From Octopus sinensis (Eukaryota): DNA of 64,000 bases. This document shows, in pieces, positions 17,789 through 61,610 of the stretch. The notes under the pieces are model-generated. The model was not told the origin of the DNA, ran no database searches, and saw only the letters and a program-made list of their open reading frames with translations. The DNA is taken from positions 13,247,579-13,311,578 of the forward strand of contig NC_043026.1 of NCBI RefSeq assembly GCF_006345805.1. The letters are read 5' to 3'. How positions within the stretch are numbered: the first letter of the stretch is position 1; each line of letters begins with the position of its first letter. Position numbers and translations under genes: made by a program.

Positions 17789-17790
17789 AT

Positions 17791-17924: not shown

Positions 17925-18181
17925 TGGAGATACATAGCATGTTTCATAAATCTGCCAGTTTAAAGTATAGTTAAGCATATACCTTTTAAAGTAGCTCTTT
18001 CGTAATTCTATGTTAAATTAATATAATGTGGATGTACAAATTTTACATATTTTATACTAACATATAAAAATATGTACAAAACTGATTAATACGATTAATA
18101 GCCAGGCTAGCAAGAAGCTGAAGGGTGTGTGTTTTTCTTGGCTAAACTGGCAACATGACCATCCGAAATACAACAATATCT

Positions 18182-18553
18182 AGAGGCGCAATGGCCCAGT
18201 GGTTAGGGCAGCGGACTCGCGGTTTCGATTCCCAGACCGGGCGTTGTGAGTGTTTATTGAGCGAAAACACCTAAAGTTCCACGAGGCTCTGGCAGGTTGT
18301 GGGGTGGCGAACCCTGCTGTACTCTCTCACTACAACTTTTTCTCACTCTTACTTCCTGTTTCTGTTGTACCTGTATTTCAAAGGGCCGGCCTTGTCACTC
18401 TCTGTGTCACGCTGAATATCCCCGAGAACTACGTTAAGGGTGCACGTGTCTGTGGAGTGCTCAGCCACTTACACGTTAATTTCACGAGCAGGCTGTTCCG
18501 TTGATTCGGATCAACCGGAACCCTCGACGTCGTAACCGACGGAGTGCTTCTTC
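18182..18553 (+). mobile_element. SINE family 1, full length, deleted-head subfamily
   Basis: 13-bp TSD TACAACAATATCT (18169-18181, 18554-18566); empty paralogous site at 44583-44595. Confidence 0.9.
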
Positions 18554-19221
18554 TACAACAATATCTGTTTCAACACACGATTTCACATAAAAAATCTTGC
18601 ACAACAAATAAATAAACGTAAGATTAAATCATTTAGCAATTAAACTGGACGTATCTAGCCAAAACATTCTTCTTAGTTTATGTTCAAACTGGTCAGGTCT
18701 GGCCTCTCATACCTATCATACAATGTCTTTCTAAAAATTTAGTTTCCTCATCAAAATCTCAAAGCTACAGGATACGCAGGATTAATACAAAACAATGTGG
18801 ATGAATCTGCATTACTTTTGAAAGAATTATGTGAATGCAAAAGATTTAAATAAAAAATTGAAACTTGTTCAACTCAGTTTTGTGTAAAAGTTTAATATTT
18901 AAGTAATTTGCTATTAACTCTTTTGTTACTATATGAAACCAACGGCTAAAAATTCTCTGAAGCAGCAACCCTCCTGATTTTATCAATGAGCCACCATTGC
19001 CTGGTGAAAAGGATTAGCCTGCAACAGTCCTGTGCTGGTGCCATGTAAACGTGTCCATGCCATTGCCACATTAAAAGCACCCAATACACTTTGTGAAGTG
19101 GTTGGCATTAGGAAGGGCATCCAGCCATAGAAACCAAGCCAAATCAGAGTGGAACCTGGTGCAGCTCTCTAGCTTCAGCCAACCAATCCGACCCATGCCA
19201 GCATGGATAACAGATCTTTAT

Positions 19222-19590
19222 CTTCTCTTTTACTTGTTTCAGTCAGTTGACTGCGGCCATGCTGGAGCACCGTCTTTAGTCGAGCAACTCGACCCCGGGA
19301 CTTATTCTTTGTAAGCACAGTACTTATTCTATCGGTCTCTTTTGCCGAACCGCTAAGTGATGGGGACGTAAACACACCAGCATCGGTTGACATGCAATGC
19401 TAGGGGGACAAACACAGACACACACACATACATATATACGACGGGCTTCTTTCAGTTTCCGTCTACCAAATCCAAGGCTTTGGTCGGCTCGAGGCTATAG
19501 TAGAAGACACTTGCCCAAGCTACCACACAGTGGGACTGAACCCGGAACCATGTGATTGGTAAGCAAGCTACTTACCACACAGCCACTACT
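19222..19590 (-). mobile_element. SINE family 3
   Basis: Full family structure; mirrored in the inverted duplicate at 43565-43940; absent from the paralog near 13075. Confidence 0.85.
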
Positions 19591-20065
19591 ATGCCTATGT
19601 CAAAGGACAATAATTAAGATGATGATGTATAAAGAATACTGAATCCATTGCAATTTTTGATAGACAAAATTTTATTTTTTTTCTACACAAAAATATAAGC
19701 AATGTCTGTGCAATGAATGACAAAATGTCAAAAGAGTTGAAATGTTATTGTTACAACAGTGAGAAAGTGAAATGAGAGTCGTTGTGTTGCCGTTGCTGAT
19801 CGTTCATTGTGGTTGTTGTCAGCATCTGTCTATGGATACTCATTGCCTCATCTCTGCTGTCTTTCACTGTTCTCTCTGCTCTAACCCAATGCTCTCTGTC
19901 AAGTAGCCGTGCTGCATTTATATTGATGGTTAGGCTCAGAAACAAGCCTTTCTCTAATGTGACTGTGAATATGAACACTAGAACGGTTTTTCTCAAGCGT
20001 GGATTCCTAAGTGCTTTTTTTTAATCATTTTTTGATCCAAAATATTTTCCACAGATTTCAAAGTT

Positions 20066-21223
20066 TCATGGTTTTATTGCACTGTGTATTCTTTGGTGAA
20101 TAGCAAGACTTGATCTCCCAGGAAACGAATTACCACATGTTTTACACATGAAGCGTTTATCCCCAGTATGAATCCTCTTGTGAACTATAAGATTAGAACT
20201 ATCAGAGAACCATTTACCACATGTCTCACAACGGAAGGGTTTCTCCCCACTATGGATTCGTTTGTGAGTCTTTAAATGGGAATTATTTTTGAATGACTGC
20301 CCACACGTTTCACAACGATAGGGCCTTTCTCCTGTGTGTATGCGCCTGTGTGCTGTTAAGTTACCATTAGAAGCGAAATACTTATCACATATTTCACACC
20401 GATAAGGTTTTTCCCCAGTATGTTTTCCTTGGTGAACCACGAGGCTGGAATTCTCACTGAAAGATTTCCCACAAATTTTACAGCGGAATGGTCGTTCTCC
20501 AGTATGAGTCCTTCTGTGGGATTTTAAGTGGCTGCTAACGGTAAAAGATTTCCCACAGAGATCACAGGTGTAGGGTTTCTCACCCGTATGTACCCTCACG
20601 TGGTTTGTTAAATCACATTTGATCACAAAACTTTTCCCACATATATCACAGTGAAAAGGCCTTTCCCCACTGTGTATTCGTTGATGGGGTATAAGTGTAG
20701 AACGATGACAGAAAGATTTACCACATATTTCACAGTGATACCGTTTTTCTCCCGTGTGGATTCTTACGTGAACTACAAGATCATATTCATCAAAGAAAGC
20801 TTTCTCACACGTTTCACAACGATACTTTTTTTCCGCGGTATGTATTCGTTTGTGCTTTGTTAAATAACTTTTACAGACGAATGATTTCTCACATAATTCA
20901 CACTGATATGGTTTTTCTTCACTGTGTAATTTTTTGTGTTTCCTTAAATAACGATTAGAAGCAAAATCTTTCTCACACGTTTCACATCGATATAGTTTCT
21001 CTGTTTTGTGTATTTCTCTGTGCGTTAAAACTTCATGTTCTGAAGAGAATGTTTTCCTACAAATCTCACAGCGATATTCAAGAATATTCCTTTTATCTAA
21101 TAACCTTTCTTTAGATTCATTAATTAAAGGCTTTTCGTCGCTGAATGTCCGTGTAACTGTTTCTGTATCGGTCTGAACAGTCGGGTTAGAATTGTTCAAC
21201 CGATTAATGTCCTGCATTTTCAT
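20066..21223 (-). CDS. C2H2 zinc-finger protein, family A copy 2 (385 aa, 12 fingers)
   Basis: Intact ORF, exactly 28 aa (one finger) shorter than copy 1; hybrid finger CHRSTLIP. Confidence 0.93.
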
Positions 21224-22530
21224 TCTTCAGAATTCAGGAATATATTAATATATAACGATCCAGTTCCTTGTCTTGAATCTCATAAGAATTTTGATAACGT
21301 TTGTGGAAAATATGCAATGCAGATATATATTCTATTCGCTACGAAAATGCAGATTGTCAACTGGGTCGTCTCTTTTCTCCTTTAAGAGATGGGATATAGT
21401 TTAATAAAGGCAAAAACGATTTTAGAGAGAGATCATAAATGACAGGTAACAGAACTTCGGGTGAACATTTTGTTTTTTCTCGCAGCTTATAACAAAACAA
21501 TCCCTTAGCATAATAGTAAATCATTGAAAGACAGGGCGATGCAATTTTCCACTAACGATTGTAAGGTGCGCGCAATGATATTCCGAATGAGTTACAAACA
21601 ATCGACGATGTAACTTCATTTATGATGGAATTAATTAATGATGAAGGTGATAGAACACTGACCCTGAAACATGTAGGCAATCGGATGTCGTCCACAAACA
21701 TTAATATGTCCTCTTAATATAATTATTACACATTATAACAATTAAATTGCCGAAACGATGGATTTATCGGTGACATAGGTTAAAAGTCCCCAACAAAAAT
21801 TAGTACATTCAGAAATGCCGTTCTTTGGCGTTCATCAGTTTGGGGTTGATTAAATGAGTACCAATTAAAAACAGATGTTGATGTAATCTAATTACCCGCT
21901 GTCCTGAAATTTCTGGCTTTGTGGCAAAATTTGAAATCAAATATTAACACACTTCTGTTTTTATGATATAAGGTAAAACGTAAAGGCAAATAGGAAAAAA
22001 ATCTAGCTAGAAGTTCAAAAAAATACTCTCATTTAATATCTCAGAAGATTGAATTGATTCAATCAACTTAGTCTATGACAAATGCTCTAAAATACTTTTA
22101 TTTCAGTCCTTTAGCATTCAAAAGTAATGCTTATTTATTCATATTGTTTGAATTAATCATGCATTATCTCTGTTACGATATAGGTATACACGTCTGGTGT
22201 AAATTGGTATTACATAAATAAATACTTGGTTGTGGTTATCTAACAATAACGTATCGCAGAAATATATATTAACACAGAACGCATTCCGTATTACTCACGT
22301 GTAGGTATGATACTCAGTATTTACTGTTCAACTACCGACTGCTAAATCATCACATATCGAACTAACACCCATTTCTTTATTTTGTGCATCAGGACAAGTG
22401 AGGCCATAACTTGTGGCCTCTACATGGGATGTAGCCAGCCCACTTATGCATACGTTTCTTCCTTGGGACACAAAACTCTGCTTGCGAGTACCTGTTGAGG
22501 CAAGTGAAATCAGAATTGAAATCGAAATTT

Positions 22531-23945: not shown

Positions 23946-24132
23946 GAATAAGAATTACAGTACTCACATTTTCCAATTTACTCAAATACAACGACGACGT
24001 CAAACTATCACCTGTCAACTATTCCCATGACAGTTCTCTCAGCCCTAAGGCAGCAAGCTGGCAGAAACGTTAGCACGCCAGGCGAAAGGCTGAGCATGAC
24101 TAATTCAAAACAATGTGACATTTACGGTATAT

Positions 24133-24520
24133 AGGCGCAGGAGTGGCTGTGTGGTAAGTAGCTTGTCTACCAACCACATGGTTCCGGGTTCAGTCCCACT
24201 GCGTGGCATCTTGGGCAAGTGTCTTCTGCTATAGCCCCGGGCCGACCAATGCCTTGTGAGTGGATTTGGTAGACGGACACTGAAAGAAGCCTGTCGTATA
24301 TATGTATATGTATATGTGTGTGTATGTGTTTGTCCCCCTAGCATTGCTTGACAACCGATGCTGATGTGTTTGCGTCCCTGTCACTTAGCGGTTCGGCAAA
24401 AGAGACCGATAGAATAAGTACTGGGCTTACAAAGAATAAGTCCCGGGGTCGATTTGCTCGACTAAAGGCGGTGCTCCAGCATGGCCGCAGTCAAATGACT
24501 GAAACAAGTAAAAGAGAGAG
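24133..24520 (+). mobile_element. SINE family 3
   Basis: Full family structure. Confidence 0.85.
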
Positions 24521-24582
24521 AGTATCTAAAGATGGCTATAGAGAGTGTAACTCTTTAACATTCAGATTCTTGTGTGAAATGT

Positions 24583-29020: not shown

Positions 29021-29375
29021 AATTGATTTCGATTATATAAAATTTAATTAGCATAAAATTTTCCCCATGTGATTGGGTCCAGGAAAGGCACAATAAGCAC
29101 TACGAACGTGCTTCTTTAAGAATCAACATATATTGGTTTGTCTCCCTCACATTTTAAAGGCAAACAAGAAACCCTGACTATGTATATGAACTCGAAGACT
29201 AGAATGGTTTTTCTCCAGGGTGGATTCTTACATGCTTTTTTAAAAATCACCAATCGAAAATATTTTATAGAAATCATCATAGTGGATCATCTCTCAAGGA
29301 TCAGTGTAAAATGTTTGGTGAAATGCAACCAGAAATCCATCGCATGTTTCCAAATGTTGAGCAGTTGCTCAGTCT

Positions 29376-29681
29376 ACTTTTTTTATTCCTTCTCGAGCCA
29401 TTCCTGGCTCATAAGGGCCGGTTTCCCGGTTTCTTTGGCGTATAGGTTCCCCACCTGGATGGGACGCCGGTCCGTCACAGGTGAGCTGCAAGATGCAGGA
29501 GGAAAGAGTGAGAGAAAGTTGTGGCAAAAGAGTCACCAGAAATTCGCAATTACCTTCTGCCGGAGTCGCAAAGAGCTTAGGTGTTTCACTCATAAACACA
29601 CACATTGCCCGGTCTGAGATTCGAACCCACGATCCTTCAACCCCGAGTCCGCTGCTCTAACCACTAGGCCATGTGCCTCCA
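29376..29681 (-). mobile_element. SINE with a family-1-like head and a different 3' tail, in the 3' UTR of A copy 3
   Basis: 8-bp TSD CTCAGTCT (29368-29375, 29682-29689); A and B boxes; empty site at 28220-28227. Confidence 0.88.
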
Positions 29682-29733
29682 CTCAGTCTCCTTATAGTGT
29701 GTCCAACCAGTTCTTGTGAGGATGAAAGATCTT

Positions 29734-30897
29734 TTAGGGCACTGCAATAGCACTGTGTACTTTTTGGTGAATAACAAGACTTGTTCTCCCAGAAAACATA
29801 TTCCCACACGTTTTACACATGAAGCGTTTATTATCCCCAGTATGAATCCTTTTGTGAACTATAAGATTAGAACTATCAGAGAAACATTTCCCACACGTCT
29901 CACAATGGTAGGGTTTCTCCCCACTATGGATTCGTTTGTGTCTCTTCAAATGACAATTATTCTTAAATGACTCCCCACATGTTTCACAACGATAGGGCCT
30001 TTCTCCTGTGTGTACCCGCCTGTGTGTTGCTAAGTTACCATGAGAAGCGAAATATTTATCACATGTTTCACAATGATAGGGTTTTTCTCCAGAGTGTCTC
30101 CTTTGGTGAACCACAAGACTGGAATTCGTATTGAACGATTCGCCACATATTTTACAGCAGAATGGTTTCTCTCCACTATGAATCCTCCTGTGTTTTTTTA
30201 AAACGCTTCTAACATTAAACGATTTGCCACAGAGATCACAGGTGAAGGGTTTCTCTCCCGTATGTACCCTCACGTGGTTTGTTAAATCAGATCTGCTCAC
30301 AAAACTTTTCCCACATATATCACAGTCAAAGGGCTTTTCCCCACTGTGTATTCGTTGATGAGCTACAAGAGTAGAACGTTGAGAGAATGATTTACCACAC
30401 ATTTCACAACGATAGTTTTTTTCTCCCGTGTGGATTCGTACGTGAACTACAAGATCATATTCATCAAAGAATGTTTTCTCACACGTTTCACAACGATACT
30501 TTTTTTCTGCTGTATGTATTCGTTTGTGCTTTGTTAAATAACTTTTACAGACGAATGATTTCTGACATATTTCACACTGATATGGTTTTTCTTCACTGTG
30601 TAATTTTTTATGATTTGTTAAATAACGATTAGCAGCAAAATCTTTCTCACACGTTTCACATCGATATAGTTTCTCTGTTTTGTGTATTTCTCTGTGCGTT
30701 AAAACTTCCTGTTCTGAAGAGAATGTTTTCCTACAAATCTCACAGCGATATTCAGGAATATTCCTTTTATCTAATAACCTTTCTTTAGATTCATTAATTA
30801 AAGGCTTTTCGTCGCTGAATGTCCGTGTAACTGTTTCTGTATCGGTCTGAACAGTCGGGTTAGAAGTGTTCAACCGATTAATGTCCTGCATTTTCAT
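29734..30897 (-). CDS. C2H2 zinc-finger protein, family A copy 3 (387 aa, 12 fingers)
   Basis: Intact ORF; C-terminal half almost identical to copy 4. Confidence 0.93.
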
Positions 30898-31671
30898 TCT
30901 TAAAAAGAATTCAGGAATATATTAATATATAACGATCCAGTTCCTTGTCTTGAATCTCATAAGAATTTTGATAACGTTTGTGGAAAATATGCAATGCAGA
31001 TATATATTCTATTCGCTACGAAAATGCAGATTGTCAACTGGGTCGTCTCTTTTCTCTTTTAAGAGATTTGGATATAGTTTAATAAAGGCAAAAACGATTT
31101 TAGAGAGAGATCATAAATGACAGGTAACAGAACTTCGGGTGAACATTTTGTTTTTTCTCACAGCTTATAACAAAACAATCCCTTAGCATAATAGTAAATC
31201 ATTGAAAGACAGGGCGATGCAATTTTCCATTAACGATTGTAAGGTGCGCGCAATGATATTCCGAATGAGTTACAAACAATCGACGATGTAACTTCATTTA
31301 TGATGGAATTAATTAATGATGAAGGTGATAGAACACTGACCCTGAAACATGTAGGCAATCGGATGTCGTCCACAAACATTAATGTGTCCTCGTAATATAA
31401 TTATTACACATTATAACAATTAAATTGCCGAAACGATGGATATATCGGTGACATAGGTCAGAAGTCCCCAACAAAATTTAGTACATTCAGAAATGCCGTT
31501 CTTTGGCGTTCATCAGTTTGGGGTTGATTAAATGTGTACAAATTAAAAACAGATGTTGATGTAATCTATTTACCCGCTGTCCTGAAATTTCTGGCTTTGT
31601 GGCAAAATTTGAGATCAAATATTAGCACACTTCTGTTTTAATGATATAAAGTAAAACTTAAAGGCAAATAT

Positions 31672-37360: not shown

Positions 37361-37716
37361 TTAACCCTTTCGATACCAACCAGGCTGAAACCGCCCCTGG
37401 TTCTGTAGTACAAATGTCTTGTTTTCATAAGTTTTGAATTAATATCTTCCACCAAACCTTAGTCACAATTAATGTTCCTAACACTAGCTTAATGATAACC
37501 AAGTTATTTTACTAAATTCTTTATTGTATCTAAAATAATTGAGAGAAACATAGAGCATCTCAAAATAAATATAGTAACAAAAGGGTTAAGGAATGAAATA
37601 GTTTTTTATAGAAATCATCATAGTGGATCATCTCTCAAGGATCAGTGTAAAATGTTTGGTGAAATGCAACCAGAAATCCATCGCATGTTTCCAAATGTTG
37701 AGCAGTTGCTCAGTCT

Positions 37717-38022
37717 ACTTTTTTTATTCCTTCTCGAGCCATTCCTGGCTCATAAGGGCCGGTTTCCCGGTTTCTTTGGCGTATAGGTTCCCCACCTGGA
37801 TGGGACGCCGGTCCGTCGCAGGTGAGCTGCAAGATGCAGGAGGAAAGAGTGAGAGAAAGTTGTGGCAAAAGAGCCACCAGAAATTCGCAATTACCTTCTG
37901 CCGGATTCGCAAAGAGCTTAGGTGTTTCACTCATAAACACACACATTGCCCGGTCTGAGATTCGAACCTGCGATCCTTCAACCCCGAGTCCGCTGCTCTA
38001 ACCACTAGGCCATGTGCCTCCA
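37717..38022 (-). mobile_element. Same SINE insertion in the 3' UTR of A copy 4
   Basis: Same TSD CTCAGTCT and near-identical sequence to 29376-29681. Confidence 0.88.
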
Positions 38023-38074
38023 CTCAGTCTCCTTATAGTGTGTCCAACCAGTTCTTGTGAGGATGAAAGATCTT

Positions 38075-39238
38075 TTAGGGCACTGCAATAGCACTGTGTA
38101 CTTTTTGGTGAATAACAAGACTTGTTCTCCCAGAAAACATATTCCCACACGTTTTACACATGAAGCGTTTATTATCCCCAGTATGAATCCTTTTGTGAAC
38201 TATAAGATTAGAACTATCAGAGAAACATTTCCCACACGTCTCACAATGGTAGGGTTTCTCCCCACTATGGATTCGTTTGTGTCTCTTCAAATGACAATTA
38301 TTCTTAAATGACTCCCCACATGTTTCACAACGATAGGGCCTTTCTCCTGTGTGTACCCGCCTGTGTGTTGCTAAGTTACCATGAGAAGCGAAATACTTAT
38401 CACATGTTTCACAATGATAGGGTTTTTCGCCAGAGTGTCTCCTTTGGTGAACCACAAGACTGGAATTCGTATTGAACGATTCCCCACACATTTTACAGCA
38501 GAATGGTTTCTCTCCACTATGAATCCTCCTGTGTGATTTTAAAACGCTTTTAACATTAAACGATTTGCCACAGAGATCACAGGTGTAGGGTTTCTCTCCC
38601 GTATGTACCCTCACGTGGTTTGTTAAATCAGATTTGATCACAAAACTTTTCCCGCATATATCACAGTGAAAAGGCCTTTCTCCACTGTGTAGTCTTTGAT
38701 GAGCTACAAGAGTAAAACGATGACAGAAAGATTTACCACATATTTCACAATGATACCGTTTTTCACCCGTATGGATTCTTACGTGAACTACAAGATCATA
38801 TTCTTCAAAGAATGTTTTCTCACACGTTTCGCAACGAAATTTTTTTTCTGCGGAATGTATTCGTTTGTGCTTTGTTAAATAACGTTTACAGACGAATGAC
38901 TTCTCACATACTTCACACTGATATGGTCTTTCTTCACTGTGTAATTTTTTATGATTTGTTAAATTACTATTAGTAGCAAAATATTTCTCACACGTTTCAC
39001 ATCGATATAGTTTCTCTGTTTTGTGTATTTCTCTGTGCGTTAAAACTTCCTGTTCTGAAGAGAATGTTTTCCTACAAATCTCACAGCGATATTCAGGAAT
39101 ATTCCTTTTATCTAATAACATTTCTTTAGATTCATTAATTAAAGGCTTTTCGTCGCTGAATGTCCGTGTAACTGTTTCTGTATCGGTCTGAACAGTCGGG
39201 TTAGAAGTGTTCAACCGATTAATGTCCTGCATTTTCAT
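38075..39238 (-). CDS. C2H2 zinc-finger protein, family A copy 4 (387 aa, 12 fingers)
   Basis: Intact ORF with 12 fingers; ends HSAIAVP like copy 3. Confidence 0.93.
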   Translation of the reverse strand: MKMQDINRLNTSNPTVQTDTETVTRTFSDEKPLINESKEMLLDKRNIPEYRCEICRKTFSSEQEVLTHREIHKTEKLYRCETCEKYFATNSNLTNHKKLHSEERPYQCEVCEKSFVCKRYLTKHKRIHSAEKKFRCETCEKTFFEEYDLVVHVRIHTGEKRYHCEICGKSFCHRFTLVAHQRLHSGERPFHCDICGKSFVIKSDLTNHVRVHTGEKPYTCDLCGKSFNVKSVLKSHRRIHSGEKPFCCKMCGESFNTNSSLVVHQRRHSGEKPYHCETCDKYFASHGNLATHRRVHTGERPYRCETCGESFKNNCHLKRHKRIHSGEKPYHCETCGKCFSDSSNLIVHKRIHTGDNKRFMCKTCGNMFSGRTSLVIHQKVHSAIAVP

Positions 39239-40852
39239 TCTTCAGAATTCCGGAATATATTAATATATAACGATCCAGTTCCTTGTCTTGAATCTCATAA
39301 GAATTTTGATAACGTTTGTGGAAAATATGCAATGCAGATATATATTCTATTCGCTACGAAAATGCAGATTGTCAACTGGGTCGTCTCCTTTCTCCTTTAA
39401 GAGATGTGGCTATAGTTTAATAAAGGCAAAAACGATTTTAGAGAGAGATCATAAATGACAGGTAACACAACTTCAGGTGAACATTTTGTTTTTTCTCACA
39501 GCTTATAACAAAACAATCCCTTAGCATAATAGTAAATCATTGAAAGACAGGGCGATGCAATTTTCCATTAACGATTGTAAGGTGCGCGCAATGATATTCC
39601 GAATGCGTTACAAACAATCGACGATGTAACTTCATTTATGATGGAATTAATTAATGATGAAGGTGATAGAACACTGACCCTGAAACATGTAGGCAATCGG
39701 ATGTCGTCCACAAACATTAATGTGTCCTCGTAATATAATTATTACACATTATAACAATTAAATTGCCGAAACGATGGATTTATCGGTGACATAGGTTAAA
39801 AGTTCCCAACAAAATTTAGTACATTCAAAAATGCCATTCTTTCAAATGATCCAACCCGTTGTTAATCAAAAGGCATTTGCCAGCAAAATAATTAGTTATC
39901 AACGAAATAGTCTCTTCGTGCTCCCTCAGCCTGCGAAAAATAGCCACCGAATTTGCCTCAAATCCAAAGCAATGTTTTTGTTTGGTGCTATTCCATGTAT
40001 GTGAAACAAAAACAACATTTTGTTTAATAACTTACATAAAAACCATTAAACTAAAATAAACATTAATTAGGCCGTTAAGTTTGTTTTCACTTTTGAACAC
40101 GTAGATTTTAGCTTTGGATTCATGATTTGAGGCAAATTCGGTGGCTATTTTTCGCAGGCTGAAGAAGCACGAAGAGACTATTTCGTTGATAAGAAATAAT
40201 TATTTTGCTGGCAAATACCTTTTGATTAACAACGGGTTGGATCAATTGAAAGAACGGCATTTCTGAATGTTCTAAATTTTGTTGGGGACTTTTAACCTAT
40301 GTCACCGATAAATCCATCGTTTCGGCAATTTAATTGTTATAATGTGTAATAATTATATTACGAGGACATATTAATGTTTGTGGACGACATCCGATTGCCT
40401 ACATGTTTCAGGGTCAGTGTTCTATCACCTTCATCATTAATTAATTCCATCATAAATGAAGTTACATCGTCGATTGTTTGTAACGCATTCGGAATATCAT
40501 TGCGCGCACCTTACAATCGTTAATGGAAAATTGCATCGCCCTGTCTTTCAATGATTTACTATTATGCTAAGGGATTGTTTTGTTATAAGCTGCGAGAAAA
40601 AACAAAATGTTCACCCGAAGTTCTGTTACCTGTCATTTATGATCTCTCTCTAAAATCGTTTTTGCCTTTATTAAACTATATCCAAATCTCTTAAAAGAGA
40701 AAAGAGACGACCCAGTTGACAATCTGCATTTTCGTAGCGAATAGAATATATATCTGCATTGCATATTTTCCACAAACGTTATCAAAATTCTTATGAGATT
40801 CAAGACAAGGAACTGGATCGTTATATATTAATATATTCCTGAATTCTGAAGA

Positions 40853-42178
40853 ATGAAAATGCAGAACATTAATCGGTTGAACACTTCTAACCCGACTGTT
40901 CAGACCGATACAGAAACAGTTACACGGACATTCAGCGACGAAAAGCCTTTAATTAATGAATCTAAAGAAAGGTTATTAGATAAAAGGAATATTCCTGAAT
41001 ATCGCTGTGAGATTTGTAGGAAAACATTCTCTTCAGAACAGGAAGTTTTAACGCACAGAGAAATACACAAAACAGAAAAACTATATCGATGTGAAACGTG
41101 TGAGAAAGATTTTGCTACTAAGCATGCTTTAAGGAAACACAAAAAATTACACAGTAAAGAAAAACCATATCAGTGTGAATTATGTGAGAAATCATTCGTC
41201 TGTAAAAGTTATTTAACAAAGCACAAACGAATACATACAGCAGAAAAAAAGTATCGTTGTGAAACGTGTGAGAAAACATTCTTTGATGAATATGATCTTG
41301 TAGTTCACGTAAGAATTCATACGGGAGAAAAAAACTATCGTTGTGAAACTTGTGAGAAGTCATTCAGTCATCGTTTTACTCTGGAAGCTCATCAAAGAAT
41401 CCACACCGGTGAAAAACAGTATCGTTGTGAAACTTGTGGTAAATCATTCTATCAACGTTCTACTCTTGTAGCTCATCAACGAATACACAGTGGGGAAAGG
41501 CCTTTTCACTGTGATATATGTGGGAAAACTTTTGTGGTCAAATCTGATTTGAAAAACCACGTGAGGGTACATACGGGAGAGAAACCCTTCACCTGTGATC
41601 TCTGTGGCAAATCGTTTCATGTTAAAAGCGGTTTAAAATTACACAGGAGGATTCATAGTGGAGAAAAACCCTACACCTGTGATCTCTGTGGCAAATCTTT
41701 TACCGTTAGCAGCAACTTAAAATCACACATGAGGACTCATACTGGAGAACGACCATTCTGCTGTAAAACGTGTGGGAAATCTTTCAGTGAGAATTCCAGT
41801 CTTGTAGATCACCAACGGAAACATACTGGGGAAAAACCGTATCAGTGTGAAATATGTGATAAGTATTTCGCTTCTAATAGTAACTTAAGAGATCACCGGC
41901 GCATACACACAGGAGAAAGGCCCTATCGTTGTGAAACGTGTGGGCAGTCGTTTCTAACTAATTCTAAATTGGAGAGACACAAACGAATCCATAGTGGGGA
42001 GAAACCCTACCATTGTGAGACATGTGGGAAACGGTTCTCTGATAGTTCTAATCTTGCAGGTCACAAAAGGACACATATCGGGGATAAACGCTTCATGTGT
42101 AAAACATGTGGTGATTCGTTTCCTGGGAGATCAAGTCTTGCTATTCACCAAAGAATACACAGGGCAATAAAACCATGA
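40853..42178 (+). CDS. C2H2 zinc-finger protein, family A copy 5 (441 aa, 14 fingers), inverted
   Basis: Intact ORF, 28 aa longer than copy 1; head-to-head with copy 4. Confidence 0.93.
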
Positions 42179-43120
42179 AACTTTGAAATCTGTGGAAAAT
42201 ATTTTCGATAAACAGTGATTAAAAACGATTCCACATTGTAGAAAAACCGTTCTAGTGTTCATATACACAGTGACATTAGAGAAAGGCATTTTCACTGTGA
42301 AATCTTTTAGCACTAATGGTCCCTTAGAAAGACAAACAAATACACACAAGCGGAAATTGTTTTAACAGACATATGTAAGGAAATTTCTTACAGTCCCCCA
42401 ACATTGAAGAATATCCATTGTGGTCATGTGTTGTAAGAATCAATCTTTTACAGATTTTATCTGAGAAAAAAAGCCTTTATCTGAACCCTTTAGCACTCAC
42501 ACCTGACATCTACATCAGTCACGTGATTGTTTACTTTTAGAATGAGATTGTAGGGTAGGTGTGAGAAGAAGGAGTTTGCTGGTTTCAACATAAAGACGGA
42601 TACAGCTAGTGTAACCCGCTAGCTTTCAGATTCCTGTGTCAAATGTAATGCTTATTTATTCGCATAGTTTTCAATTAATCCTGCATTATCTCAGAGCTTT
42701 GAAATTTTGATGATGTGATTGTATATTTTTACTATGACATTGTAGAGCAGATGTGAGAGGTCAAATCTGGCCTGTTTGAGCATAGAACAAGTAGAATATT
42801 TGGGCGGGCCAGATGCGGCCAGTTTAAGTGCTGAAGGGTTAAAGTGTTTGGGAAATCCATTACTGTGAATTACAATGAGATCCTGATTAGATTAGTACAG
42901 GGGTTAATAAGAAAAATGCAAGGGTAAAGCATTTGTCTCCAAAATTTGTGGAAAATTATACATTCAAAAGCCATGTTAATCACAAGCAAATATGTTCAGA
43001 AGAAAAATATTCAAATTATTTGTTCAGAATATTCTTTGTAAATCTTTTAGCATTAATGGTCCCTTAAAAAGACAAATACATACAAAAGGAAAATCTTTTC
43101 ATAGCTGAATGCAAGGAAAT
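42179..43120 (+). pseudogene. Fossil finger fragments downstream of family A copy 5 (interrupted by a MITE)
   Basis: KP*NFEICGKYF, ERHFHCE, KSFSTNGPLERQTNTH, KICGKLY and CKSFSINGPLKRQIH in broken frames. Confidence 0.6.
42486..42838. mobile_element. piggyBac-like MITE (possibly composite)
   Basis: TGAA|CCCTTTAGCAC...GTGCTGAAGGG|TTAA. Confidence 0.65.
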
Positions 43121-43215
43121 TTCTTACACAACTTCAGTCACTCACTCACACTCTTAGCTGCACTCACCTGGCTCTTGTACTTACATATATCTTCATCAGT
43201 TATTCCTTCATAGTA

Positions 43216-44980
43216 TTGTTTCTGAGCCTAACCATCAATATAAATGCAGCACGGCTACTTGACAGAGAGCATTGGGTTAGAGCAGAGAGAACAGTGAAAG
43301 ACAGCAGAGATGAGGCAATGAGTATCCATAGACAGATGCTGACAACAACCACAATGAACGATCAGCAACGGCAACACAACGACTCTCATTTCACTTTCTC
43401 ACTGTTGTAACAATAACATTTCAACTCTTTTGACATTTTGTCATTCATAGCACAGACATTGCTTATATTTTTGTGTAGGAAAAAAATAAAATTTTGTCTA
43501 TCAAAAATTGCAATGGATTCAGTATTCTTTATACATCATCATCTTAATTATTATCCTTTAACATAGGCGTAGTAGTGGCTGTGTGGTAAGTAGCTTGCTT
43601 ACCAATCACATGGTTCCGGGTTCAGTCCCACTGCGTGGTAGCTTGGGCAAGTGTCTTCTACTATAGCCTCGAGCCGACCAAAGCCTTGGATTTGGTAGAC
43701 GGAAACTGAAAGAAGCCCGTCGTATATATGTATGTGTGTGTGTCTGTGTTTGTCCCCCTAGCATTGCATGTCAACCGATGCTGGTGTGTTTACGTCCCCA
43801 TCACTTAGCGGTTCGGCAAAAGAGACCGATAGAATAAGTACTGTGCTTACAAAGAATAAGTCCCGGGGTCGAGTTGCTCGACTAAAGACGGTGCTCCAGC
43901 ATGGCCGCAGTCAACTGACTGAAACAAGTAAAAGAGAAGATAAAGATCTGTTTTCCATGCTGGCATGGGTCGGATTGGCTGGCTGAAGCTAGAGAGCTGC
44001 ACCAGGTTCCACTCTGATTTGGCTTGGTTTCTATGGCTGGATGCCCTTCCTAATGCCAACCACTTCACAAAGTGTATTGGGTGCTTTTAATGTGGCAATG
44101 GCATGGACACGTTTACATGGCACCAGCACAGGACTGTTGCAGGCTAATCCTTTTCACCAGGCAATGGTGGCTCATTGATAAAATCAGGAGGGTTGCTGCT
44201 TCAGAGAATTTTTAGCCGTTGGTTTAATATAGTAACAAAAGAGTTAATAGCAAATTACTTAAATATTAAACTTTTACACAAAACTGAGTTGAACAAGTTT
44301 CAATTTTTTATTTAAATCTTTAGCATTCACATAATTCTTTCAAAACTAATGCAGATTCATCCACATCGTTTTGTATTAATCCTGCGTATCCTGTAGCTTT
44401 GAGATTTTGATGAGGAAACTAAATTTTTAGAAAGATATTGTATGATAGGTATGAGAGGCCAGACCCGACCAGTTTGAACATAAACTAAGAAGAATGTTTT
44501 GGCTAGATACGTCCAGTTTAATTGCTAAATGATTTAATCTTCCGTTGTGCAAGATTTTTTATATGAAATCGTGTGTTGAAAGAGATATTGTTGTATTTCG
44601 GATGGTCATGTTGCCAGTTTAGCCAATAAAAACACACACCCTTCAGCTTCTTGCTAGCCTGGTTATTAATCGTATTAATCAGTTTTGTACATATTTTTAT
44701 ATGTTAGTATAAAATATGTAAAATTTGTACACCCACATTATATTAATTTAATATAGAATAACGAAAGAGCTACTTTAAAAAGTATATGCTTAACTATACT
44801 TTAAACTGGCAGATTTATAAGACATGCCATGTACCTCCAAGCAATCTTTCGGGTTCTGTTCGTAGGTTTTTTTAATACCAGGACGCTGGATGCTGAGAAA
44901 GTGAAGAAAAAAAAACGAGACGAAAAAAGCCTCTTTGAGTGGGTGACTGATATTGTTTACCAATACCGAAAAATTGCCAT
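43216..44980. repeat. Inverted near-identical duplicate of 17789-19960
   Basis: Mirror ORFs (19093+/43847-, 19175-/43768+); lacks the 18182 SINE. Confidence 0.9.
43565..43940 (+). mobile_element. SINE family 3
   Basis: Reverse complement of 19222-19590. Confidence 0.85.
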
Positions 44981-45010
44981 GGCAATCTTTCGGTAGTGGT
45001 AAATGATATC

Positions 45011-45424
45011 TATTTCTTTACTGCCCACAAGGGTCTAAACACAGAGAGGACAAATAAGGACAGACATAGGTATTAAGTCGATTACATCGACTCCAGTGTG
45101 TAACTGGTACTTAATTTATCGACCCCGAAAGGCTGAAAGGCAAAGTCGACCTCGGCGGAATTTGAACTCAGAACGTAGCGGCAGACGAAATACCTATTTC
45201 TTTATTACCCACAAGGGGCTAAACATAGAGGGGATAAACAAGGACAGACATAGGTATTAAGTCGATTACATCGACTCCAGTGTGTAACTGGTACTTAATT
45301 TATCGACCCCGAAAGGATGAAAGGCAAAGCCGACCTCGGCTGAATTTGAACTCAGAACGTAGCGGCAGACGAAATATCGCTAAGTATTTCGCCCGGCGTG
45401 CTAACGAGTCTGCCAGCTCACCGC
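45011..45424 (-). mobile_element. SINE family 2 dimer
   Basis: TSD AATGATATC / AACGATATC (45002-45010, 45425-45433). Confidence 0.85.
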
Positions 45425-46354
45425 AACGATATCATTCACCCACACAATCATCCCGCATGATACAAAGAGGGTAGTCTGAAAAACAGGGTAAATGACGTTG
45501 TCTCCTCATTGCCTCAGTCTGTATACCAGTAACTAAGGATCGCCAAAAACATTACATATATTGTTTACAATTACAGTTTCTACAACGAAAGTGGACACTC
45601 TTGGTTTCTTATTCTTTTCCTTATACTCGTTCCACTTTTTGCATCAACCTTTTATCTTTTTTGCGTATTTTTCCTATTGTTTTTATTTCTTCTTCACTTT
45701 TTCAGCATCCAGCTTCCTGGTATTAAAAAAAAAAAAAAAAACGTACGAACAGAGCTCGAAAGATTGCTTGGCGATACATGGCATGTTTTTATAAATCTGC
45801 CAGTATCGTTAAGCACGTACGTTTTAGTAGCTCTTTCATAATTGTTTCTTAAAATCGATATAACGTGTGTGCAAATGTTATATACTTTATACGAATAGAT
45901 AAAAAAATCGTATCTTTTCCATCTCAGGCACAGATGAGATCCAAATCAGCTGTACAAAACTGATTAATAAGATTTAAACTACTTAGTAATTAAACTGGAG
46001 GTATCTGGCCAAAACATTCTTCTTAGTTTATGTTCAGCCTGGTCTCTCATACCTATCATACAATATCTTTCTAAAAATTAAGTTTCCTCATCAAAATCTC
46101 AAAGCTAGACGATATGCTTGATTAGTACAAAACGATGTGGATGAATAAGCATTACTTTTGAAAGAATTATGTGAATAAAGATTTAAATCAATAATTAAAA
46201 CTTGATCAACTCCGTTTTGTGTAAAAGTTTAATATTTAAGTAATCTGGTATTATCCCTTTTGTTACCATATTTCTGTTGAAATACACAGTTAATGCTTCA
46301 GTTAGTTTTGACAACAGTAAAGAATTTATTAAAAACAGTCAAAACTATATGCGC

Positions 46355-46740
46355 ATGAGTGGTTGTGTGGTAAGTAGCTTGCCACATGGTTCCGGGTTCA
46401 GTCCCACTGCGTGGCATCTTGGGCAAGTGTCTTCTTCTATAGCCCCGGGCCGACCAACGCCTTGTGAGTGGATTTGGTAGACAGAAACTGAAAGAAGCCC
46501 GTCGTATATATGTATATATATGCGTTTGTGTGTCTGTGTTTGTCCCCCTAGCATTGCTTGACAACCGATGCTGGTGTGTTTACGTCCCCATCACTTAGCG
46601 GTTCGGCAAAAAAGACCGATAGAATAAGTACTGGGCTTACAAACAATAAGTCCCGGGGTCGATTTCCTCGACTAAAGGCGGTGCTCCAGCATGGCCGCAG
46701 TCAAATGACTGAAACAAGTAAAAGAGAGTAAAGAGTATAT
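46355..46740 (+). mobile_element. SINE family 3
   Basis: Near full length. Confidence 0.82.
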
Positions 46741-52698: not shown

Positions 52699-52852
52699 GG
52701 CGATCCTTCGGTATAGGTACCGTAAGTGGCTTTGTGTACGTTTCTGAAGATAACAGAAACCCTTTTCTCCCCCCCTATATATATATATATAAAAAAAAAA
52801 CACTTTCTTGAAATGTATCCGGTACTTCCGGTACCTATACCGAAGTTACGCC
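52699..52852. mobile_element. Merlin-like MITE, type 2 (154 bp)
   Basis: TIR GGCGATCCTTCGGTATAGGTACCG / CGGTACCTATACCGAAGTTACGCC; perfect 8-bp TSD AAATTGTT; sister copy at 59773-59971. Confidence 0.85.
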
Positions 52853-52910: not shown

Positions 52911-53137
52911 GTACTACTAAAGAAGAGTGGTCCCGGTGCGCGCACTCGCGCTAGCTAGTCATGACTAGTCGATCCTTACTTTGTGTTTTTGTTTTATTTA
53001 CTGTTTTAAAAAATATTTACTTTGTGTTTTATTTACTTTGCTAGGTAGTCGTTGTAGGATCGACTAGTCACGACTAGCTAGTGCGGATGCGCGAGTACGC
53101 GACTGCGCGCACCGGGACCACTCTTCTTAAGTAGTAC
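52911..53137. mobile_element. Palindromic MITE of unassigned superfamily
   Basis: TIR GTACTACT(A/T)AAGAAGAGTGGTCCCGGTGCGCGCA plus an inner IR CTAGCTAGTC(A/G)TGACTAGTCGATCCT around an AT-rich spacer. Confidence 0.75.
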
Positions 53138-53914: not shown

Positions 53915-54305
53915 TTTGCTCTTTTACTTGTTTCAGTCATTTGACTGCGGCCATGCTGGAGCACCGCCTTTAATCCAGCAGCTCGACCCTGGGACTTATT
54001 CTTCTGTAAGCCCAGTACTTATTCTATCGGTCTCTTTTGCCGAACCGCTAGATAACGGGGACATAAACACACCAGCATCGGTTCTCAAACGATGTTGGAT
54101 GGGACAAACACAGACACACAAACATATATATACATATATACGACGGGCTTCTTCCAGTTTCCATCTACCAAATCCACCCACAAGGCTTTGGTCGGCTCGA
54201 GGCTATAGTAGAAGACACTTGCCCAAGGTGCCAGGCAGTGGGACTGAACCCAGAACCATGTAGTTGGTAAGCAAGCTACTTACCACACAGCCACTCCTGC
54301 GCCTA
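53915..54305 (-). mobile_element. SINE family 3 next to the B2 promoter
   Basis: Empty paralogous site GGAAATAACTCATAGAAG at about 60429-60446. Confidence 0.85.
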
Positions 54306-54424
54306 ACTCATAGAAGTCATTATGGAATTGAAGACGAAAGACGAGTAATGCTTAGCGCCATTTCGTCTGCCGTTACGTTCTGTAAAAACGTCCCTTGTAT
54401 TGTCTAATCATGTTTATATATATA

Positions 54425-54815
54425 CTCTTTTTACTTGTTTCAGTCATTTGACTGTGGCCATGCTGGAGCACCGCCTTTAGTGGAGCAAATCGACCCCAGG
54501 ACTTATTTTTTTTGTAAGCCTAGTACTTATTCTATCGTTCTTTTCTGCCGAACTGCTAAGTTACGGGGACGTAAACTCACCAGCATCGGTTGTCAAGTGA
54601 TGTTGGGGGGGAGGGGACAAACACAGACACACACACATATATATATACATATATACGACGGGCTTCTTTCAGTTTCCGTCTACCAAATCCACTCACAAGG
54701 CTTTGGTCAGCCCAAGGCTATAGTAGAAGACACTCGCCCAAGGTGCCACGCAGTGGGACTGAACCCTGAACCATGTGGTTGGTAAACAAGCTACTTACCA
54801 CACAGCCACTCCTGC
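54425..54815 (-). mobile_element. SINE family 3
   Basis: Full family structure. Confidence 0.85.
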
Positions 54816-55135
54816 ATTAAATTTTTAATTGACCCTAAATTGCTCTGTGATGTAAAATCATCCGTGATTGTGTTGTCATTTCTTTGTATAGCCCTTAATG
54901 GATAATAAAAAAAGAAATCATAGGGTTATGTGTGTCTGTGGAGTGCTTGGCCGTTTGCATGTTAATTTCACAAGTAGGCTGTTCCATTAATTCAACCAAC
55001 TGAAATACTCGTCACAGTAACCCAAGGTGAGTCAGGCCAAAATGCAGCAATATATACTAAGGACCTTTTGCAGATAAGGATTAATTTTCTAGCTTTCTCT
55101 CATTGGTATAACTAGTAAATTTATAAGCAACATTG

Positions 55136-55500
55136 GCGCAGGAGTGGCTGTGTGGTAAGTAGCTTGTTTACGAACCACATGGTTCCGGGTTCAGTCCCAC
55201 TGCGTGGCACCTAGGGCAAGTGTCTTCTACTATAGCCACGGGCCGACCAAAGCCTTGTGAGTGGATTTGGTAGACAGAAACTGAAAGAAGCCCGTCGTAT
55301 ATATATATATATGTGTGTGTGTGTCTGTGTTTGTTCCCCCAGCATCGCTTGACAACCGATGCTGGTGTGTTTATGTCTCCGTCACTTAGCGTTTCAGCAA
55401 GAGACAGATAGAATAAGTCCTGGGGTCGAGTTGCTCGATTAAAGGCAGTGCTCTAGCATGGCTGCAGTCAAATGACTGAAACAAGTAAAAGAGTAAAGAA
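55136..55500 (+). mobile_element. SINE family 3
   Basis: Full family structure, inverted relative to the two preceding copies. Confidence 0.85.
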
Positions 55501-58988: not shown

Positions 58989-59403
58989 GGCGATCTTTCG
59001 TCTCTAGTAGACCTTTCCGTCGATTTCCGTAAAAATTTTTTTTTTTTTTACATATGGGCTTGCGGGAACTGTTGAAGTAATGAGAGCGAAAGAGACTAAG
59101 AGAAAGCGATTGTATGACGAGGGAAGTTCTTTTGAAGTTACCGTGCATGGGAGCATTGATGTACATGTGTGCGTGCGTGTGTTTGATGGGGTGTGGGAGA
59201 CAGACAGTATGTTGTGTAAGTGAAGTGCTTCTGTTAGTGTGTGTGAAGAGACAGAGTAATGTGTGAAAGAAAGAGATAACTGAAATTTTTTACTCGGTGT
59301 ATGTGTATATGTATGTATATTACTTCAAAAGTTCCCGCAAGCCCATATGTAAAAAAAATATAAGGAAATCGACGGAAAGGTCTACTAGAGACGAAGGATC
59401 GCC
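58989..59403. mobile_element. Merlin-like MITE, type 3 (~90-bp TIRs)
   Basis: TIR begins GGCGATCTTTCGTCTCTAGTAGACC; perfect 8-bp TSD TCGAACTG; one-ended copy at 53156-53480. Confidence 0.85.
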
Positions 59404-60016
59404 TCGAACTGTCATTTGCTTCCACGGAAATACCCGAAGTGAAGTGATTTGATTTTGTCGAGTTATATCGAAGGAATGCCCGTAAAGGATATGACAGAGA
59501 TGAGATAAAAATAATGAATTCGTGAAAACATAAAACATGTACTTTTGTGTCTGTATGTGTATCTGTATATGTGTGTATGAGTGAGTGTCTGTACGAGAGT
59601 GTGTTATCCTGGGTATGTCACTGTTCAAGTCGCTCGTGAGTGAATGTGTTCGCGACCGTGTTTTTCACTGTTCAGCTGCAAAAAATAAACCTTAGAGAAA
59701 TTTTAAAAATTTATATGGAAGCTGGCGAACAAATACTTTCAGTGGCGTAACTTCGGTATAGGTAGTGTTTTTGGCGATCTTACGGTATAAGTACCGGTGT
59801 CGTAAGATCACCGTGTTGGGTTTAAAAAAATTTTTTTTTATATATATATATGGGGGGTTAGGGCTAGGGTTTGTGTTAGGGTTAGGGGTGGGAGAAAAGG
59901 GTTTCTGTTATGTTCAGAAATGTAAAGAAAGCCATTTCCGATACTTACGGTACCTATACCGAAGGATCGCCAACAAAAGAAGAAAAAAAGAAAACTCCGG
60001 AAAAATTGCGACTTAC

Positions 60017-61251: not shown

Positions 61252-61610
61252 GGAGGCGCAGTGGTTAGGGCAGCGGACTCGCGGTTTCGATTCCCAGACC
61301 GGGCGTTGTGAGTGTTTATTGAGCGAAAACACCTAAAAGCTCCACGAGGCTCCGGCGGGGGATGGTGGTGATCCCTGCTGTACTCTTTCACCACAACTTT
61401 CTCTCACTCTTACTTCCTGTTTCTGTTGTACCTGTATTTCAAAGGGCCAGCCTTGTCACACTCTGTGTCACGCTGAATATCCCCGAGAACTACCTTAAGG
61501 GTACAGGTGTCTGTGGAGTGCTCAGCCACTTACACGTTAATTTCACGAGCAGGCTGTTCCGTTGATCGGATCAACCGGAACCCTCATCGTCATAACCGAC
61601 GGAGTGCTTC
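61252..61610 (+). mobile_element. SINE family 1, near full length
   Basis: Collinear with 18182-18553. Confidence 0.85.

Follow-up and report, generated by a model that had tools for sequence, protein, structure and literature searches.

Inversion of a ~5-kb C2H2-ZNF unit in Octopus sinensis with both breakpoints at the outer tip of a resident MITE's left TIR

Results

The tandem array and its inverted unit

The window, i.e., the whole stretch of 64,000 nucleotides that was analysed, belongs to Octopus sinensis chromosome CM016888.1 (assembly GCA_006345805.1) and contains no N or gap. It holds a C2H2-ZNF cluster, which is a tandem array of single-exon units. An old MITE (8-bp TSD, TIR starting with GG) lies ~865 bp upstream of each array gene. 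Along the array, direct unit c4 is followed by inverted unit c5 and then by the direct paralogue M6-s6.

37604–39970, minus strand: direct unit c4; its ORF (38075–39238, 387 aa) is intact and its upstream flank stops at unit position 17667
39983–44980, plus strand: inverted unit c5, one circularly permuted period (17789→19945→15575→17786 on the minus strand)
42294–43215, no strand: c5 sequence of ~925 bp that the reference unit lacks at its s1/c2 junction; this indel is unrelated to the inversion

The ~5-kb unit c5 is inverted, and both of its breakpoints lie where the left TIR of the resident MITE has its outer tip. The sequence-only reading had described the block 39983–44980 as reversed. 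This is confirmed by self-BLAST, in which one period of the direct reference aligns collinearly with the minus strand of the block. Positions 44980→44583 match 17789→18181 (94%), 44595→43216 match 18554→19945 (97.9%), 42293→41588 align with 19939→20655 and additionally with 15575→16535, and 41700→39983 match 16078→17786 (94.5%). In unit coordinates the block ends fall at 17786 and 17789–17791, i.e., 3–5 bp apart, and adjoin GGCAATCTTTCGGTATTGGTA, the tip of which is at 17791; the earlier placement of both ends at one point outside the TIR is thus correct. The anatomy of the locus and the position of the breakpoints are direct observations.

The c5 ORF (40853–42178, plus strand, 441 aa) is intact. 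The c4 and c5 genes are arranged head-to-head, and their ATGs are separated by 1,614 bp. The search with the c5 protein found it encoded only on CM016888.1 of GCA_006345805.1; the c5-specific N-terminus used as a query gave zero matches, and the search for full-length c5 homologues was dominated by vertebrate ZNFs. None of four window ORFs checked against a clustered protein collection was present there (0/4), and no RNA was found in the window by ARAGORN and an Rfam scan.

Un-rearranged reference junctions

The flank-TIR junction of the unit is kept in two un-rearranged copies.

17738–17834, plus strand: c1 reference junction; flank ending ...GGAATAACACCATCAT, then the TIR with its tip at 17791
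11638–11924, plus strand: c0 junction; 46-bp flank, MITE M0, then ~120 bp of s sequence

The c0 junction region is 89% identical to M6-s6. M0 itself occupies 11685–11805 and is bounded by the TSD AATAACAT / AAAAACAT (7/8). Since the junction is preserved both in c1 (17786 to 17791) and in c0 (11683 to 11685), the breakpoints are fixed to 2–4 nt. The ancestral sequence across the tip is TCATGG in c1 and ACATGG in c0, both of which contain CATG. No paralogue in the window represents an empty site without the MITE; c2 and c3 diverge sooner, at unit position 17529.

The right joint

44935–44978, minus strand: M5, truncated left end of a MITE in the inverted unit; left TIR at 44958–44978, GGCAATTTTTCGGTATTGGTA
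44979–44980, no strand: AT spacer between two TIR tips, centre of a 30-bp near-perfect palindrome
44981–45544, plus strand: M6, complete MITE; left TIR at 44981–45001, right TIR at 45524–45544
45011–45424, minus strand: SINE-like insertion in M6 (414 bp; 9-bp TSD AATGATATC / AACGATATC)
45545–46272, plus strand: s6, direct paralogue of unit positions ~17842–18934, 72–87% identical to inverted s5

The right joint, taccgaaaaattgcc-AT-ggcaatctttcggta, is the nearly clean head-to-head fusion that had been claimed, with both TIR tips intact. Its spacer (GCC-AT-GGC) equals the ancestral flank AT, and CCATGG arose through the joint itself from TCATGG or ACATGG. As DNA, the palindrome forms a hairpin of −20.1 kcal/mol (z = −7.2). 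M5 lost its right TIR through a ~200-bp deletion common to the un-rearranged copy at 17791, and was a truncated, solo left end before the inversion.

The TIRs of M6 match at 16/21 positions, its length without the SINE is 141 bp, and its right-hand TSD copy, AAAAACAT, stands directly after the element. The two TSD copies of the SINE (45002–45010 and 45425–45433) follow the pattern AAYGATATC. The right flank matches 17791–17820 over 30 bp before the SINE begins, and homology resumes at 45434 and extends to ~46272. A later SINE insertion has split the right flank, which is a true paralogue in direct orientation. A second tip-to-tip pair, at 45761–45777, is not significant (0.27 pairs expected per window).

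The left joint

39971–39982, no strand: 12-nt filler AATGTTTTTGTT of the flank-to-flank, imprecise joint

Homology of c4 stops at 39970 (= 17667), and the filler separates c4 from the block. An exact 10-mer, TGTTTTTGTT, is common to the filler and unit positions 17753–17762 in direct orientation (p ~0.002), so the filler is not random. It may be either c4 sequence kept after a ~85-bp internal deletion or a templated insertion. The earlier description of this joint as a ~120-bp loss with a 12-nt filler stands as regards the filler; the loss lies between 23 and 120 nt, and may amount to only ~23 nt plus a separate ~85-bp deletion. Palindromic P-nucleotides, which are not obligatory, are absent from the left joint. 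Inspection of both joints revealed no 8-bp repeat flanking the block.

The MITE family

52699–52852, plus strand: family member with perfect 8-bp TSD AAATTGTT and TIR GGCGATCCTTCGGTATAGGTA
58989–59403, plus strand: related MITE with perfect 8-bp TSD TCGAACTG and TIR GGCGATCYTTCGTCTCTAGTA

The left TIR of the MITE starts with GGCAATCTTTCGG. Between the sequence at 17791 and the TIR of the TSD-flanked MITE at 52699, 18/21 positions agree, the figure given earlier. In the window, the TIR 15-mer has 14 matches at ≤3 mismatches vs 1.5 expected. Three family members in the window have 8-bp TSDs, and all family tips read GGCRATC.... The two perfect 8-bp TSDs, the 7/8 TSD of M0 and the 16/21 TIR pair of M6 identify GGCRATCYTTCG as a real TE terminus, which is likewise directly observed.

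The Merlin superfamily is defined by TIRs with 5'-GG at the start and by TSDs of 8 or 9 bp (PMC8101967). The octopus family has a GG-starting TIR and 8-bp TSDs (AAATTGTT, TCGAACTG, AATAACAT/AAAAACAT), and it is this pair of features that suggests a Merlin-like assignment. TSDs of 8 bp are also made by other superfamilies, hAT and P; the octopus tip lacks the hAT-type YARNG start. No transposase gene is present in the window, where all ORFs of at least 130 aa are ZNF or repeat-derived. When metagenomes were scanned for an autonomous element using the degenerate 21-mer TIR, 7 single hits resulted, none with an inverted partner, which is chance level.

Discussion

Proposed origin of the inversion

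The inversion could begin with DNA breakage in two units, each time at the outer left-TIR tip, both TIRs being in direct orientation. The ~5-kb segment between the breaks would then be rejoined in reverse. Alternatively, and with the same result, a unit-length fragment with the same ends could be re-inserted at the same kind of site. The nearest relatives of c5 and s5 are c1 and s1, not their present neighbours, so inverted re-insertion is as possible as an in-place flip. The TIR ends would be joined almost precisely to each other, with tips intact and AT between them, and the flank ends would be joined with a loss of 23–120 nt and with 12 nt retained or templated. The cuts could be made by the family's transposase, with host end joining afterwards.

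Breakage at two directly oriented left-TIR tips with subsequent end joining, in the inversional geometry of V(D)J recombination, is the best reading, to which we give about as much credence as doubt. For two breaks that hit one and the same nucleotide in paralogous TIRs, the family's transposase is the most likely source. Of the earlier claim that a transposase cut at two direct TIRs, the geometry fits and the TIR is a real transposon end, whereas the action of the enzyme is inferred from breakpoint position only. Precedents for precise end-to-end joints made by transposase-type enzymes exist: inversional recombination by Transib transposase together with RAG2 yields normal signal and coding joints (PMC4840297), and IR-IR junctions arise when IS30 links the inverted repeats of two separate copies (PMC9333248).

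Transposase cutting is weakened by the lack of a transposase in the window and of an autonomous element with these TIRs among the scan hits. M5, being a solo, truncated end, is an unusual substrate. Alternative transposition in eukaryotes leaves a new 8-bp TSD (PMC8225341), and its absence from the octopus junctions also counts against a transposase cut. Gene conversion among copies blurs the history of the array, which tells against the best explanation as well. From a single locus, a transposase cause cannot be proved, nor can breakpoint enrichment at TIRs be demonstrated. A wider reading is tentative and rather doubtful: a non-RAG Merlin-type transposase, acting in the octopus germline on two direct TIRs (one solo), may have produced a natural signal and coding joint by V(D)J-like inversional recombination outside an immune locus, and resident MITE ends may recurrently act as cut sites through which units of the expanded cephalopod ZNF clusters are flipped or shuffled. 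The idea of such recurrent rearrangement handles comes from one case.

Alternative explanations

Template switching (FoSTeS/MMBIR) or microhomology-mediated joining, which need no transposase, could also be considered, though we think them unlikely. A nascent strand ending ...TTGCCATG would re-anneal via self-complementary CATG to the opposite strand of the paralogous unit. A second switch would close the left joint with a templated 12-nt insertion, and the MITE inverted repeats might aid stalling. The ancestral TCATGG / ACATGG spans the tip with CATG, and a switch there gives exactly TTGC-CATG-GCAA, i.e., the right joint. The filler has a 10-mer in common with sequence ~20 nt off, and palindromic microhomology with a templated-looking 12 nt is typical of replication-based or theta-mediated repair. 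However, 4-nt palindromes are common in a 4.4-kb unit (an estimated one per few tens of bp), so CATG leaves the location of both breakpoints at the TIR tip of two units unexplained. As to the MITE hairpin as a stall site, M1 has a 12-bp stem with its base at the tip (z = −2.3), but the M6 TIRs are unpaired in the minimum-energy fold and M0 has no significant structure (z = +0.8), which gives this variant weak support. A simple fold-back at CCATGG, which the sequence-only reading had held out as a possible explanation, is excluded: microhomology is present at the junction, but the arms, 72–95% alike, are not copies of each other. Inverted s5 differs from s6 (72–87% identity, ~200-bp indel) and is 97.9% identical to s1, and c4 and c5 are ~90% identical overall. 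Fold-back or DUP-TRP/INV-DUP events (MMBIR/FoSTeS) resemble the octopus locus in its palindromic junction on CATG and in that its second joint may contain a templated insertion; they differ in that the octopus arms are not copies and both breakpoints are a transposon tip in two units.

One-ended strand transfer, which we consider improbable, would join the 3'-OH of one TIR beside the tip of the other and invert the unit, and host repair would close the flanks. This is the IR-targeting / IR-IR junction chemistry of the IS30/IS3 type, and it proceeds without double-strand cuts at both ends. The tips do abut, the 2-nt spacer is the ancestral AT, IS30 targets its own IRs as well as joining those of separate copies (PMC9333248), and Merlin is a relative of the bacterial IS1016/IS1595 group (PMC8101967). 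Against it, the octopus MITE is only a putative Merlin member, and sequence alone cannot tell such transfer from cut-and-join. As far as we know, how Merlin and IS1595 elements transpose has not been characterised. An assembly artefact (a mis-joined palindrome or reverse-inserted haplotig) seems very improbable. The block does have a palindrome centre on either side, and the cluster is repetitive; however, chimeric fold-back reads give identical arms, whereas a 5–28% difference and indels are found here. Both junctions are unique sequence outside long repeats, the window is gap-free, and a TIR of 21–30 bp is generally much too short to confuse a long-read assembler. Two unrelated random breaks with NHEJ, the coincidence with the TIR tip being due to chance, are the least credible origin. 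Inversions are common in tandem gene clusters, and one case only is at hand, but the chance of both breakpoints falling within ±4 bp of one tip in a 4.4-kb unit is ~(9/4400)^2, i.e., ~4e-6, and both TIRs are intact to the last base. NAHR between left and right TIRs, replicative intramolecular transposition, a macrotransposon (M5-L to M6-R) and Helitron-like unit ends were rejected: none predicts abutting tips with M6 in its ancestral context.

Comparison with known systems

The arrangement c4, inverted (M5 s5 c5), M6 s6 has the same-orientation signals and inverted intervening DNA of V(D)J recombination (RAG; Transib with RAG2, PMC4840297). The signal ends are likewise joined head-to-head almost precisely (2-nt spacer) and the flank ("coding") ends with loss and added or retained nucleotides. 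In contrast to V(D)J, the octopus TIR shows no resemblance to RSS, and the event is a germline one in a mollusc gene cluster with a putative enzyme. P-nucleotides are not seen at the octopus joint, though V(D)J-type joining need not leave them. The octopus TSD is 8 bp long vs 5 bp for RAG/Transib.

In Ac/Ds reversed-ends transposition (PMC8225341, PMC1592236), the termini of two nearby elements also cooperate, and inversion breakpoints are located at the tips; at the right joint, M5 and M6 each keep an intact tip, as in products of this type. Ac/Ds ends, however, enter a new target with an 8-bp TSD, whereas at the octopus locus one end is fused to the other, both are left ends lying in direct orientation, and the junctions lack a new TSD. 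IS30 and copy-out-paste-in IS (PMC9333248, PMC3299598) share with the octopus locus abutted tips of two separate copies with a few bp of flank between them, and can yield inversions. Those elements are bacterial; the octopus junction is an old mutated relic without sign of reactivity. Merlin MITEs (Feschotte 2004, as summarised in PMC8101967) share the 5'-GG start and 8-bp TSD, but the octopus TIRs have no linked DDE_Tnp_IS1595 transposase.

Significance

Large C2H2-ZNF expansions and a high repeat content are known features of cephalopod genomes; to our knowledge, the restructuring of their ZNF clusters is poorly documented. At this locus, nucleotide-level evidence places the end of a resident MITE at both breakpoints of a unit inversion, which produced a divergent pair of intact ZNF genes with 1.6 kb of upstream DNA in common. 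Should the cuts be the work of a transposase, this would be a natural case of transposon ends joined to each other, signal-joint-like, instead of being integrated, and it would bear on how readily ordinary transposases yield V(D)J-like products. As far as we know, such end-to-end joining is usually discussed only for RAG and bacterial IS circles. The right joint also supplies a motif that can be searched for genome-wide, the tip-to-tip GATYGCC-N(0-4)-GGCRATC.

The zinc-finger cluster

The window (G+C 39%, no N) contains a cluster of C2H2 zinc-finger genes, each single-exon, and no transposase-like ORF. Five A-type units (c1-c5) lie in it. Every ORF examined is intact (385-441 aa), and the 441-aa ORF within the inverted block maps to chromosome record CM016888.1 of Octopus sinensis GCA_006345805.1.

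A-type units
15575-17786, minus strand: c1
19957-21826, minus strand: c2
29263-31504, minus strand: c3
37604-39970, minus strand: c4
39983-44980, inverted, ORF on the plus strand: c5

The source's gene table gives a single model, L001 (record 13278431-13299756, minus strand), whose 1,956-residue product spans the entire locus; this model probably merges several tandem ZNF units. Units c2 (21826) and c3 (31504) break at a common point, unit position 17529, about 260 bp before the MITE, past which they carry unrelated sequence common to those two only (21826-21992 matches 31504-31670). The two units are part of a longer repeat period, about 10 kb in length (c2 to c3 to c4).

The inverted block

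Read on the minus strand, the block (39983-44980) is collinear in self-comparison with one period of the c1-c2 tandem, the direct-orientation reference for unit positions.

Segments of the block (minus strand) and their reference positions
44980 to 44583: 17789 to 18181, 94% identity
44595 to 43216: 18554 to 19945, 97.9% identity
42293 to 41588: 19939 to 20655 (equivalent to 15575 onward), 87% identity
41700 to 39983: 16078 to 17786, 94.5% identity

Because collinearity extends across all four segments, the block amounts to exactly one unit in circularly permuted order. The block ends neighbour each other in unit coordinates (17786 and 17789-17791), and the earlier claim of a reversed block with both ends at nearly the same unit point is thereby borne out. 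An un-rearranged junction is preserved in c1, where GGAATAACACCATCAT is followed by GGCAATCTTTCGGTATTGGTA with the tip (the outer end of the left TIR of the MITE) at 17791; a second occurs in the fragment c0, where GTAATAACAT is followed by GGCAATCTTTCGG at 11685.

An indel of about 925 bp (42294-43215) is present in the inverted unit and absent from the s1/c2 junction (19945/19946), s1 being the c1 unit sequence beyond the MITE; either c5 gained it by insertion or the reference unit lost it by deletion. Close to its ends (42300, 43040) there are direct repeats of about 60 bp. A 358-bp element (18193-18550 and 61255-61610, 93% identical between sites) is found in s1 and is absent from s5, its inverted counterpart, so it was inserted later into the reference unit.

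The transposon termini

Members of the TIR family, whose TIR sequence is GGCRATCYTTCGG, were located by a scan with two 21-mers. Every tip in the family reads GGCRATCYTTCG.

Family members with flanking sequences
52699-52852: perfect TSD AAATTGTT
58989-59403: perfect TSD TCGAACTG
11685-11805: copy M0, TSD AATAACAT / AAAAACAT (7/8)
44981-45544: copy M6, 141 bp without its SINE, TIR pair 16/21, then AAAAACAT

A TIR 15-mer is enriched in the window (14 matches versus 1.5 expected). The TIR is a genuine transposon end: the TIR-like sequence noticed at the breakpoints has TSD-flanked relatives and shares in this enrichment. With tips that start in GG and TSDs of 8 bp, the MITE family agrees with Merlin as defined in PMC8101967, and judged from this one locus the family could be placed there. 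An autonomous element was found neither among the window ORFs nor in a metagenome scan with the degenerate 21-mer TIR.

In copies M1 (17791) and M5 (in the inverted unit) the right TIR was lost through a shared deletion of about 200 bp. The deletion predates the rearrangement, because M1 has it yet keeps the ancestral junction; M5 was therefore a solo left end at the time of the event.

Ends of this family are adjacent or nested at 59744-59971, with a solo GGCGTAACTTCGGTATAGGTA at 59744 and, 8 nt past it, an element at 59773-59971 whose TSD is not clear. Another tip-to-tip TIR-like pair, AGATTGCT-t-GGCGATAC, lies at 45761-45777 in s6, the unit sequence beyond M6; it is equivalent to 17917-17933 and 44831-44847 and reads GGAGATAC in c1 and c5. 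It is not significant, since 0.27 such pairs are expected per window and one occurs beyond the main joint.

The right joint and its flank

The right joint (44979-44980) reads ...TACCGAAAAATTGCC-AT-GGCAATCTTTCGGTA..., with neither of the two TIR tips damaged and with an AT spacer identical to the two flank bases before the tip in c0 and c1. The nearly clean head-to-head fusion proposed by the sequence-only reading is thus confirmed. As single-stranded DNA the joint forms a 30-bp hairpin (-20.1 kcal/mol, z = -7.2). CCATGG arises from the joint itself; the site originally read TCATGG or ACATGG, whose sole palindrome is the 4-nt CATG. The AT spacer may consist of one flank base kept at each of two cut ends or of two kept at one end, or may stem from a template switch on CATG, the derived product of which is exactly TTGC-CATG-GCAA.

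The right flank 44981-45010 matches 17791-17820 at 27 of 30 positions, and this 30-bp match was all that the sequence-only reading had noticed; the homology reaches further. A 414-bp SINE-like insertion (45011-45424) is flanked by a 9-bp TSD, AATGATATC / AACGATATC, and once it is taken out the homology runs on in direct orientation to about 46272. The right flank (M6-s6) is therefore a genuine direct paralogue; its identity to c0 is 89%, and to the inverted M5-s5 only 72-87%.

The left joint

At the left joint (39971-39982) c4 homology stops at 39970 (unit position 17667), c5 begins at 39983 (17786), and AATGTTTTTGTT stands between them. These 12 nt between the flanks agree with the sequence-only description; its estimate of ~120 bp lost may shrink to about 23 nt. 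An exact 10-mer within them, TGTTTTTGTT, recurs in direct orientation at unit positions 17753-17762; only about 0.2% of random window 12-mers do equally well. In one reading c4 extends to about 17763 and lost about 85 bp internally in a separate deletion, which leaves a loss of only about 23 nt at the joint; in the other, the 12 nt were inserted by templated copying of sequence about 20 nt away. Loss from the c5 flank end is limited to 2-4 nt. Neither a P-nucleotide-like palindrome at the joint nor, by folding, a significant hairpin in its region was found.

Possible origin of the inversion

Mis-assembly is unlikely, since the arms of the palindromes are not identical, both junction sequences are unique and the window is gap-free. 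Fold-back copying was rejected, and chimeric reads are unlikely, because either would give identical arms, whereas in both palindromes the two arms are substantially different. Two random breakpoints are also unlikely: the probability that both fall within +/-4 bp of one tip in a 4.4-kb unit is about 4e-6, and a site-specific cause is therefore needed. NAHR between left and right TIRs, replicative intramolecular transposition and macrotransposon excision were discarded, since none predicts abutting tips with M6 in its ancestral context.

The most economical cause is that the transposase of the MITE family cleaved two left TIRs in direct orientation, each at its tip, after which host end joining would have connected TIR end to TIR end and flank end to flank end. 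The topology is that of V(D)J inversional joining. Transib transposase with RAG2 performs inversional recombination in which both signal and coding joints are normal (PMC4840297), and IS30, which also targets its own IRs, forms IR-IR junctions between the inverted repeats of two separate copies (PMC9333248); transposase-type enzymes can accordingly yield such joints. An IS30-type one-ended strand transfer would give the same sequence as cut-and-join. In Ac/Ds reversed-ends transposition, the known eukaryotic route, the ends integrate at a new target, which then bears an 8-bp TSD (PMC8225341). This does not match the block structure, and a new TSD of this kind is absent at the block junctions. 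Template switching on CATG, with templated insertion at the left joint, reproduces both junction sequences; it leaves unexplained why the breakpoints of two different units both coincide with the tip, and the MITE hairpin that might stall a fork is weak on folding. The transposase-cut interpretation is partly supported, as regards breaks at TIR tips and joint geometry; initiation of the breakage by a transposase, as judged from this single locus, has in our view an even chance of being correct. The inversion is best filed as a variant of transposon-end-mediated rearrangement; that the TIRs are recurrent rearrangement handles we infer from one locus.

Relationships among the copies

The units fall into {c1, c2, c5} versus {c3, c4}, and the nearest unit to c5 is c1 (96.5%). 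Identity between units c4 and c5 is about 90% overall, rising to 95% near the joint. Identity of s5 to s6 is 72-87%, plus an indel of about 200 bp; s5 and s1 are 97.9% identical, though about 25 kb apart. Since c5 and s5 are nearer to c1 and s1 than to their present neighbours c4 and s6, an in-place flip and a reversed re-insertion are equally possible; in the latter, a unit-length fragment or circle would have been opened at the tip and put in reverse at the c4/M6 tip. The TIR tips are the break sites under every version.

The 5' 870 bp (columns 16660-17529; 5' ORF part and upstream) are 97.4-99.7% identical across all five units, versus 68% to 97% for the zinc-finger part. This contrast suggests active gene conversion or homogenisation, or constraint on the N-terminus and promoter while the fingers diverge.

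Other repeats in the window

The SINE-like element has a 184-bp tandem core and no ARAGORN or Rfam match.

Copies of the SINE-like element
968-2669: 9 units
4964-5545: 3 units
14994-15343: about 2 units
45011-45424: about 2 units, 9-bp TSD

An interspersed repeat of about 390 bp is present in at least 7 copies, in both orientations and 83-93% identical (19215-19597, 24131-24521, 43563-43940, 46351-46730, 53915-54305, 54423-54815, 55132-55497). A G+C-rich element with an A+T-rich core (52930-53135), beside the TSD-flanked MITE at 52699-52852, ends in long, nearly perfect inverted repeats, ggtcccggtgcgcgc...ctagtcgatcc plus complement.
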